Positions 15,778 to 17,456 of a DNA stretch of 64,000 bases are shown here, in pieces. The notes below the pieces were generated by a model. The model saw only the letters and a program-made list of their open reading frames with translations. It ran no database searches and was not told where the DNA came from. How positions within the stretch are numbered: the stretch's first letter is position 1; the number at the start of each line of letters is the position of its first letter. A program made the position numbers and the translations under genes. The stretch lies in IMG/VR virus record IMGVR_UViG_3300035180_001778, positions 286,470-350,469 of that record. One strand, written 5' to 3'.

Positions 15778-16065
15778 ATGAGCGCAACGACGGACGACGA
15801 AGATCGAAAAAAGGCACCTCTCCGAAAGGTCTTCTCGATCTACTGGTACGTGAAGGCCGAGGGGGTGGTGTTCGGCCCTAACTGGGGGGACTACACGGAT
15901 ATCAATCCTGCGGTACACGACCATGGCTCTGATCCCATCGTTGAGAACAGACTCGGGATGTACCAACCCTCAGATATCCTCGAAGCCAAGGAGATCCTGC
16001 GATCCAAAGGCTTCAAGAACGTTCGCGCCGTGAAGGTCACGGTCTATCGGAAGCAGCGGGGCTAG
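15778..16065 (+). CDS. hypothetical protein
   Basis: 95-aa ORF directly after the tRNA, GGAG upstream. Confidence 0.7.
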   Translation: MSATTDDEDRKKAPLRKVFSIYWYVKAEGVVFGPNWGDYTDINPAVHDHGSDPIVENRLGMYQPSDILEAKEILRSKGFKNVRAVKVTVYRKQRG

Positions 16066-16379
16066 ACCAGCGCGAGAGGAAGTCTCTGAAGGAGCTTCCT
16101 GCCATTCGGCTCGATGGCAATGGCCGTCATCTCATTCTGCCGATCGGGTTCATGGAAGACCGAGCACTTGATGTCTCGGTCTTCTGCCTTTTGTACCAGC
16201 TTCCTGAGCGCCATCTCATCCGGCACGGCCTTGAGGATGAGGTAGTTCGAGGTCTTGTACCACTCCCGATCGATCTCGGGATGTTGGTCGACGAACTCCC
16301 GGAAAGCGTGAGCCGCTTGAATGGCCTGTTGCCCGGCGGGAAGGTCGCTGCGTGTGACGAGGAAGAGCTTCTGATTCAC
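16062..16379 (-). CDS. Pth2-like peptidyl-tRNA hydrolase
   Basis: KLFLVTRSDL..GQQA.QAAHA…W…LIL..V.DE..L…F.EPD…TAIA. Confidence 0.8.
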   Translation of the reverse strand: MNQKLFLVTRSDLPAGQQAIQAAHAFREFVDQHPEIDREWYKTSNYLILKAVPDEMALRKLVQKAEDRDIKCSVFHEPDRQNEMTAIAIEPNGRKLLQRLPLALV

Positions 16380-16433
16380 CTGAACACCTGTAGGGAGGAA
16401 GAAGGCTTCCTCTTGGCGGCCCGCTGGAGAGCG

Positions 16434-16643
16434 CTATCCTCTGGACATGCCCTCAACGTGGACCGAATACGAAGTCGAAAACGAGACACCCAACCGCCGT
16501 GTTCGGCGAGCTATGCGCAAGCACAAGGCTCGCCCCGGAGTGACCGTGATCGTGTGCTCGCGACCCTCAGCTCCCCACGCACAACCTGACCACCCACCCT
16601 CAAGGCGGTTCGGCGATGAATGCTGCCGCTGGGAAGAAGCCAT
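16434..16643 (-). CDS. hypothetical protein
   Basis: 69-aa ORF co-oriented in the operon; a competing plus-strand ORF exists. Confidence 0.35.
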   Translation of the reverse strand: MASSQRQHSSPNRLEGGWSGCAWGAEGREHTITVTPGRALCLRIARRTRRLGVSFSTSYSVHVEGMSRG

Positions 16644-16645
16644 AG

Positions 16646-16927
16646 CTACGCAGCCGCCTCAGCAACCGAGTCCTCGGCACGGAGGAAGGCCTCTGCTTCC
16701 GTGATCAGCGCCTTGAGCTTGCAGTCTTCGGCGTGGCCGAACGTGAGCTTGCTGCGACGGCTCTCGTTCGTGGAACCAGGCTGAAGGCCGTCGCACGAGG
16801 AACACTGCACGATCGAATCGGAGCAGCACCCACGCCCACAAGGAACCCGCACGTCGACCCACTCGTGCTCGACGGCGATTTCGAGGAGGTCCCGGATGAT
16901 GTCCGCGGTCGTCCGGACTTCTTCCAT
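16646..16927 (-). CDS. Cys-rich hypothetical protein
   Basis: MEEVRTTAD…CGRGCC…CSSC…H..DC; overlaps upstream stop. Confidence 0.7.
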   Translation of the reverse strand: MEEVRTTADIIRDLLEIAVEHEWVDVRVPCGRGCCSDSIVQCSSCDGLQPGSTNESRRSKLTFGHAEDCKLKALITEAEAFLRAEDSVAEAAA

Positions 16928-17456
16928 CAGACCCGAGCCTCCTCGATAGCCTGCGTCTCCGCCGCCTTCATCACGAGCCGGGCCAGATGCCAGGTCATGG
17001 GGGCGGGGCCGCCAGCAAGCCACGCGGTGACCGCTGCCCGCGTCCAGGAGCCAGCCGCGAGGCTGGCATACTCCTCGATGGCCTGGAGGATGTTCGTGAC
17101 CGAGGGGCCGTTCTCGGGGCCACACAGAGCGCCTCCATGCTCTGGTACGTCCGACCCCGAAGAGCCACGTACGCCAGCATGAGGTAACGAGCCGTGTCGC
17201 CTTCGAGCCGCTTGTTGTCCCAGAGCGCGTACCGCGCCGGGCCCGTTTCCGGCCGGTGGAAGGGCTTCAGGTCCTTCTTACCGGGAGAAGGGTAGTTCGT
17301 CCCGCGGGTCAATTCCCGACCCTGACGGACCTTCGCCAGCTCCTCGATCCCGCCAGCCTTCCACTTGAGGCTGTTGATGTCGTTCCGGATGCCCCGGATG
17401 ACTTCGTTCTGGTTCTTGATGTCCTGCTTCAACGCCGCCGCATTCATGTTCTTCAT
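16927..17456 (-). CDS. hypothetical protein (R.LMLAY.ALRGR.Y..ME), apparent 2-nt frameshift near 17125
   Basis: Removing a TG from CTCTGTGTGGCC gives a 175-aa ORF ending …QAIEEARV. Confidence 0.7.

Follow-up and report, generated by a model that had tools for sequence, protein, structure and literature searches.

A conserved phage module linking a Pth2-like hydrolase and a basic all-helical protein to a stop-codon-reading tRNA

The terminal 64 kb of a single 350,469-bp jumbo phage contig (60% G+C; positions 286,470 to 350,469 of IMG/VR record IMGVR_UViG_3300035180_001778), a stretch of 64,000 nucleotides (nt) that is referred to here in its entirety as the window, contain one copy of a conserved phage module that runs from a basic all-helical protein, hereafter the partner, to a peptidyl-tRNA hydrolase (Pth) of a Pth2-like, EPD-type clade and on to a transfer RNA (tRNA) that reads a stop codon. 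In the window this tRNA carries the anticodon UCA (tRNA-UCA) and is placed on the opposite strand from the protein genes (Table 1). There is good support for the linkage of the three parts, and its recurrence in dozens of unrelated large phages suggests a joint function during stop-codon read-through. The reading favoured here, to which a probability of roughly 45% is given, is that the hydrolase and its basic partner clean up or recycle the peptidyl-tRNA made by nonsense suppression. No close relative of the phage was found among phage records by BLAST; several metagenomes hold near-identical contigs.

Association with stop-anticodon tRNAs in other phages

Loci for comparison were drawn from IMG/VR with two motif patterns of the EPD-type clade and taken with flanks of ±5 kb, and all anticodons rest on the register assigned by ARAGORN. 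In this motif-based scan, a canonical suppressor tRNA was found within ±5 kb in 57 of 80 loci. Dereplication at 90% identity gave 84 lineages spanning 23-70% G+C, 60 of which have a suppressor tRNA (45 CUA, 9 UUA and 6 UCA) at a median distance of 316 nt from the Pth2-like gene; in 54 of the 60 it shares the strand of that gene, and in 53 it lies downstream. An open reading frame (ORF) of the partner family, detected by profile search, precedes the Pth2-like gene on its own strand in 53 of the 84 lineages, and in 19 of those 53 it ends no more than 30 nt from the Pth2-like match. The pairing of the partner with Pth2, which a preliminary description of this DNA had proposed from the window alone, is conserved in other genomes, and it was recovered from the partner side too: the neighbourhood reached by a search from the distant partner P0083 again holds PTH2, and the sole tRNA there is a tRNA-UUA. 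The tie to suppressor tRNAs, in which all three stop anticodons take part, is far stronger and broader than the window could show on its own. Partner presence and suppressor presence showed no significant association with each other (Fisher p = 0.14).

Among the assemblies, the association was seen in loci L002-L010 and L021-L023. The tRNA-UCA of L002 follows the Pth2-like gene by 14 nt, and the more distant relatives L004, L006 and L007 likewise have a tRNA-UCA; L008 has two tRNA-UUA genes, L021 has one, and L023 has a tRNA-CUA 9 nt downstream. INPHARED phages with the association are Bxz1, Myrna, the 735-kb LR756501, LR756500, LR745208 and Lak-A1/B5. Bxz1 gp154 and Myrna gp84 belong to the same protein family (38-42% identity), the former being followed by a tRNA-CUA that is labelled 'tRNA-OTHER' in the record. 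In Myrna (gp84) and in uncultured phages of 735, 462 and 485 kb a tRNA-CUA or tRNA-UUA is found beside the gene, and in Lak-A1 and Lak-B5 a tRNA-UUA adjoins the Pth2-like gene. No nearby tRNA was found for three weaker homologues (LR756511, Stenotrophomonas CM1 and Ralstonia RsoM2USA). The Rfam tRNA model, applied to 25 loci, confirmed every ARAGORN suppressor call except that of L010, a tRNA-CUA with an atypical loop that is called by ARAGORN only, and the tRNA of L015 is marginal in Rfam (29.5 bits). Taken together, the suppressors are normal in the anticodon loop and mixed in discriminator and acceptor stem, and 6 of 74 are type II.

On a tree of the Pth2-like proteins (quick maximum-likelihood search, 109 columns) the anticodon types are interleaved, and close modules, for example those of L021 and L032, have unrelated tRNA bodies. 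Such close modules keep a stop anticodon; the tRNA has been replaced repeatedly, with the stop anticodon as the property that is kept. When low-GC loci were examined for local recoding by a crude measure of ORF coverage, only Lak stood apart.

The location of the Pth2-like gene inside a tRNA array in Bxz1, Myrna and L023, together with an RNA ligase nearby in L110, is consistent with a more generic housekeeping of tRNA clusters, in which the enzyme would serve general ribosome rescue, for instance after the action of host anticodon nucleases, and the proximity of the suppressor would reflect shared descent from an ancestral tRNA array. General ribosome rescue or support of the array has been proposed for the Pth2 of jumbo phages (PMC7824862) and of the tRNA arrays of cluster C mycobacteriophages (PMC5966550). 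These proteins are of the same family as the one described here and the two papers are silent on suppressor tRNAs; unlike the setting that they describe, the specific neighbour here is a stop-anticodon tRNA together with a second conserved protein. This explanation is ranked third and is considered rather improbable, in that it accounts poorly for the enrichment of suppressors: across 13 tRNA-array loci the tRNA nearest to the Pth2-like gene is a suppressor in 8, against a random expectation of 1.46, and in loci with one to three tRNAs suppressors make up 57 of the 89 tRNAs. Nor does it fit the swapping in of unrelated tRNA bodies with retention of the stop anticodon, or the arrangement in the genome of the window, where a 40-gene tRNA cluster is situated ~36 kb away and the suppressor stands alone beside the Pth2-like gene.

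The hydrolase, its partner and the tRNA in the window

The presence of a Pth2-like gene, as given in the preliminary description, was confirmed by the match of its product (P0001) to PF01981 above the cut-off (37.7 bits, cut-off 23, E 2.6e-9) and to phrog_1866 (E 4e-15). A profile of the clade matches seven Pth2 sequences in the PDB (E 1.7e-9 to 1.4e-4), and the AlphaFold2 (AF2) model, with a predicted local distance difference test (pLDDT) score of 95.8, has the Pth2 alpha/beta fold, with Foldseek template modelling (TM) scores of 0.79-0.81 against 2zv3, 1q7s, 3erj and 1xty. The protein retains the RxDL and AQxxHA motifs, which, along with the fold, it has in common with archaeal and eukaryotic Pth2 (PF01981; M. 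jannaschii MJ0051, 2zv3; human Bit1, 1q7s; S. solfataricus, 1xty). Unlike these, it is phage-encoded, lies beside a suppressor tRNA and has lost both the GKGK Lys and DAGxT. The GKGK loop is 2 residues shorter in the clade and reads P-x-G-Q-Q (G-Q/x-Q) with no conserved Lys; K18 in this loop of S. solfataricus Pth2 is described as the catalytic Lys, and the EPD-type clade has no equivalent of it. In place of DAGxT, the motif of the catalytic Asp, stands an invariant E77-P78-D79 that is accompanied by the loss of 4 residues; an acidic residue is still present, and either E77 or D79 may correspond to the Asp. Scores fall far below the NCBIfam equivalog cut-offs for cellular Pth2 orthology (NF003314, 28.1 vs 126 bits; TIGR00283, 26.5 vs 82). 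By sequence and predicted fold, the protein belongs to a phage clade that has diverged within the Pth2 family and has had its active site remodelled.

One activity that could be imagined for such an enzyme is counter-defence, through cleavage of the bonds that carry N-acetylated groups on aminoacyl-tRNAs poisoned by host GNAT toxins of the TacT/AtaT type, with the neighbouring tRNA being incidental. A study (10.1101/2021.12.20.473312) reports that bacterial Pth detoxifies TacT-acetylated tRNA. This is a very improbable account of the module, as it leaves the stop-anticodon tRNA and the partner unexplained, and family searches with the neighbours gave no defence or anti-defence family.

The search for the partner, in which an intact homologue was compared with 1.84 billion representative proteins, recovered 139 clusters, all of ~100-230 amino acids (aa) except one 516-aa protein with five matched stretches. 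Their common motif is G..R..LW..KR..G...R..LLAYG.LRGR.Y..E, followed by a later W, and the profile of the family (the RYLxLAYGxLRGRxY family), built from 60 members, has conserved positions at G67, R70, W74, K77, R85, G96, Y99, E103 and W140. The family is strongly basic (median isoelectric point (pI) 9.85) and its model is all-helical (pLDDT 95.2), and in this the basic helical character that had been ascribed to the protein of the window holds at the level of the family. No known family or fold was found for the partner in Pfam, PHROGs, NCBIfam, a PDB profile search, Foldseek against the PDB or a wide VIA-align search, and no match in the fold search or the feature search of the ESM Atlas; Foldseek and VIA-align returned generic helical hairpins only (Z ≤ 7.4). 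By these comparisons, the partner appears to be a member of an undescribed family, for which the role first suggested, in ribosome binding or in the modulation of termination, would be hypothetical.

In the window the partner gene is broken. The preliminary description had given a 175-aa protein, but no single frame is open throughout: an insertion of 2 nt at 17121-17126, which had been overlooked, splits the gene. The first piece (P0005) starts with ATG at 17456 and ends with TGA at 16995; the conserved N-terminal part, which includes the RYLMLAYVALRGRTY motif, takes up residues 1-~110, so that the LAY.ALRGR.Y motif noted earlier is indeed present in the ORF starting at 17456, and the final 46 residues have the look of a wrong reading frame. 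The C-terminal part is found in the -1 frame, where it is protein-like and has no start codon of its own, and both pieces match the profile of the partner family. In locus L002, on a related 64-kb contig, a 170-aa homologue (P0006) spans both parts in one frame, with 64% identity to the window in the N-terminal part and 88% in the C-terminal part. The 2 extra bases sit in CTCTGTGTGG, where the intact L002 homologue reads GCG AAC TGT GGC.

An assembly error is an unlikely source of this frameshift, given that the same 153-aa product occurs on 9 contigs from at least 6 samples and through two pipelines (JGI and Logan assemblies). The same broken allele is found in L001 as well, and its repeated recovery by two pipelines indicates a real allele of this phage population. 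A programmed frameshift is possible but unsupported, with no classical slippery heptamer at 17121-17129. Codon differences between the window and L002 (synonymous/non-synonymous) number 7/8 in the C-terminal part of the partner and 16/3 in the Pth2-like gene; the former would fit relaxed constraint without being decisive. A scan for promoters and terminators gave a single weak promoter-like site 5' of the partner and no terminator.

The tRNA-UCA is 73 nt long and folds as a type I cloverleaf with a 7-bp acceptor stem and a 5-nt variable loop, and it has the canonical features of an anticodon loop (UUUCAAA) with U33 and a purine at position 37, and of a discriminator A. As had been described, it faces the Pth2-like gene: both ARAGORN and the Rfam tRNA model identify it, and it is convergent with, and 298 nt from, the sole Pth2-like gene in 350 kb. 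The body of the tRNA is nearest to the tRNA-Trp genes of other phages (77-84% identity), for which reason it would probably insert Trp. A tRNA-Sec was rejected, as the molecule lacks a long variable arm and extended acceptor/T arms; the absence of a long variable arm means that the ARAGORN label 'SeC' reflects the anticodon only. Among the 41 tRNA/transfer-messenger RNA (tmRNA) genes in the genome, tRNA-UCA is the sole suppressor and the only tRNA outside a cluster at 242-266 kb, the nearest gene of which is ~36 kb off. The cluster itself (G000:C1 242624-265701) consists of 39 tRNA genes and the phage's own tmRNA, which is located at c[249709,250060] and encodes the tag ANDNALVPMQMAA.

Recoding was tested with a codon-usage likelihood trained on the long ORFs of this genome. 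The stops of 200 confidently coding frames are TGA in 133 cases, TAG in 51 and TAA in 16. At a looser threshold, a coding signal on both sides of the stop was present for 13 of 217 TGA, 4 of 97 TAG and 2 of 26 TAA codons, and most of these stops have a new start codon immediately after them. Global recoding of TGA (code 4 type) was rejected, since TGA is the commonest stop and the 'read-on' rates are alike for all three stops. With TGA as its main stop the genome is not recoded, and tRNA-UCA therefore reads the commonest stop codon of the phage itself.

Unrestrained suppression would be costly to a phage whose main stop is read by its own tRNA, which raises the second-ranked explanation, an unlikely one in our estimation, that the Pth2-like enzyme and the partner deacylate the charged suppressor tRNA and act as a safety catch or timer. 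Read-through would then remain at a low level for as long as the enzyme is active and keeps pace with the tRNA. In favour of this, the active site departs from that of canonical Pth2, and the DTD2 aminoacyl-tRNA deacylases also use a Pth2-like fold. Further, in most lineages the enzyme and the tRNA are on the same strand and often less than 100 nt apart, and so are probably co-transcribed. Co-production of a tRNA and its inactivator would, however, be wasteful, and no regulatory element was found. The tRNA bodies, discriminators and probable amino-acid identities also vary widely between close modules, and due to this variation a suppressor-specific deacylase would need some common feature other than the body to act upon.

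A role in stop-codon read-through

Under the favoured reading, in which the proteins deal with the products of nonsense suppression, a host synthetase would charge tRNA-UCA, probably with Trp, and the charged tRNA would compete with RF2 at UGA, leading a share of ribosomes to read through. The Pth2-like enzyme would cleave the ester bond of the peptidyl-tRNA (or N-blocked aminoacyl-tRNA) that derives from read-through, one possible source of which would be ribosomes that reach 3' ends and stall, with subsequent drop-off or splitting. The basic partner would probably assist as an RNA- or ribosome-binding adaptor, and the outcome would be that the tRNA is recycled and suppression becomes tolerable. 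As the module accepts any stop anticodon and any tRNA body, recognition of one particular tRNA by the proteins is improbable. They seem indifferent both to the stop codon that is decoded and to the body of the tRNA, so that a physiological coupling is more likely than specific protein-tRNA recognition, with stop-codon reading creating the need for a hydrolase and a basic helper.

Several points weigh against this reading. We infer the mechanism from gene linkage, and ordinary read-through mostly stops at the next stop codon, so that usually little peptidyl-tRNA need arise. The shortened GKGK loop with its altered Lys position and the replacement of DAGxT by EPD mean that the substrate may differ from that of classical Pth2. 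There is no canonical suppressor within ±5 kb in 24 of the 84 lineages and no partner in 31, and, as the IMG/VR loci were retrieved by EPD-type motifs, the result holds for the EPD-type clade only. In the window itself the partner is frameshifted, and for that reason either the partner is dispensable or the module is decaying here. A complex prediction for the partner and the Pth2-like protein scored 0.00 and returned no verdict, which is evidence neither way and was not used.

The survival of the stop anticodon (any of the three) as the sole property to outlast repeated replacement of the tRNA would also be expected if the module terminated translation independently of release factors. The stop-anticodon tRNA would decode the stop and take the finished chain, and a hydrolase positioned by the partner would free the chain on or just off the ribosome, giving the phage its own terminator or rescue system when host release factors are limiting or blocked. 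The logic of such a triad would resemble rescue by tmRNA-SmpB and ArfA/ArfB, with which it shares a tRNA-like decoder, a small basic protein and the hydrolysis of a peptidyl-tRNA ester, and the invariant G-x-Q loop near the active site is suggestive as a resemblance only. Unlike tmRNA, the tRNA of the module is of the usual elongator type and reads a codon. The partner was considered as an SmpB, ArfA or ArfB protein and rejected, there being no similarity in sequence or fold in the searches listed above. We regard release-factor-independent termination as improbable, more so than either the deacylation of the suppressor or the upkeep of tRNA clusters: Pth2 enzymes are without evidence of acting on ribosome-bound substrates, a single suppressor can cover no more than one or two of the three stop codons, there is no sign here that host release factors are inhibited, and the partner is missing in 31 of the 84 lineages and broken in the window.

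Suppressor tRNAs have been described in recoded phages (10.1101/2021.08.26.457843; PMC13037316), where they are likewise phage-encoded and have a stop anticodon. These papers make no mention of a peptidyl-tRNA hydrolase. The recoded Lak phages carry the module too, whereas the phage of the window is not recoded. Among non-recoded phages, XacN1 and Atu_ph07 have suppressors without a known target, and genome papers (PMC5852040, PMC6102473) list suppressor tRNAs beside Pth and draw no link between the two. No paper linking phage Pth2 to suppressor tRNAs was found in a literature search that was incomplete, and an earlier description is possible.

A role for the hydrolase and its partner in the aftermath of suppression would join two puzzles, namely the suppressor tRNAs of phages with a standard code and the role of phage Pth2 genes. 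The tight and repeatedly renewed linkage and the new family of basic proteins combine into one testable hypothesis, for which tractable systems exist in cluster C mycobacteriophages such as Bxz1, with its Pth2-like gene adjoining a tRNA-CUA. Should the enzyme control read-through or clean up after it, it would be a missing component of the manipulation of the code by phages and could serve engineered nonsense suppression.

Neighbouring features and variant loci

Table 1. Coordinates of the module and its surroundings in the window
Feature	Position	Strand	Evidence or remark
ParB-like gene	14698..15633	+	Neighbour of the module, context only
tRNA, anticodon UCA (opal suppressor type)	15692..15764	+	ARAGORN; Rfam RF00005, 64.7 bits
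95-aa ORF	15778..16065	+	Between tRNA-UCA and the Pth2-like gene; called as a gene in JGI records
EPD-type Pth2-like hydrolase (P0001, 105 aa, GTG start)	16062..16379	-	Pfam, PHROGs, fold
266-nt spacer 5' of the Pth2-like gene	16380..16645	-	DNA-level conservation, L002
Acidic Cys-rich ORF (P0004, 93 aa)	16646..16927	-	Homologues in 8 loci
Partner gene, C-terminal 67 codons, -1 frame	16930..17130	-	Family hidden Markov model (HMM), E 4.5e-10
Partner gene, frame-0 ORF (P0005, 153 aa)	16995..17456	-	Family HMM, E 1.9e-34
Frameshift site TGTGTG, 2 extra bases	17121..17126	-	DNA alignment to L002

What lies between the partner and the Pth2-like gene varies from locus to locus. The 93-aa Cys-rich ORF fills this slot in the window and 7 other loci, including L002; in 13 loci it is taken by a protein of 355-396 aa, and in L110 by one of 180 aa. 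The start of the Cys-rich ORF overlaps the stop of the -1 frame of the partner (TGATG), and its product has no family match in Pfam, PHROGs or NCBIfam. The preliminary description had placed two small ORFs in this slot, of which the Cys-rich one is conserved and the other, a 37-aa ORF (16376-16489), is not retained as an ORF in L002. The spacer 5' of the Pth2-like gene is ~95% identical to L002, which is above the conservation of synonymous sites in the flanking genes; it contains no conserved ORF, matched nothing in Rfam and showed no significant folding (z-score -0.76). The 95-aa ORF on the other side of the Pth2-like gene overlaps the stop of that gene by 4 nt and is absent from L002, and it is probably not part of the module.

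Some loci of the clade have tRNAs or other elements that depart from the common arrangement. In L022 (7204-7276, minus strand) a tRNA-Arg (UCU) is found at the place and in the orientation that tRNA-UCA has in the clade of the window, and its anticodon is one base from that stop anticodon. The tRNAs just downstream of the Pth2-like gene in L039, L048 and L056 have 8-nt anticodon loops containing UCA or CUA, and ARAGORN reads them as having four-base anticodons (ttca, ccta and tcta). Upstream of the Pth2-like gene, L058, L061 and L064 each have a pair of unusual tRNA-like genes, at ~80 nt and 0 nt. In each pair the anticodon arm of one gene contains a long insert, and its companion, with anticodon AAU or GAU, abuts the start of the Pth2-like gene. 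A HEARO RNA (RF02033, 113 bits) is present in L094 (5405-5641) directly 3' of the suppressor tRNA that follows the Pth2-like gene. In L110, a module that was reached by way of the partner, the RNA ligase gene (5597-6229; PF09414, E 7e-33) separates the Pth2-like gene from the tRNA-UUA. The ParB-like neighbour (L002, 9529-10482; L012, 2882-4315) is conserved in the nearest relatives and recurs both in the clade of the window and in mycobacteriophage Myrna, there as gp78 with a ParB C-terminal domain.

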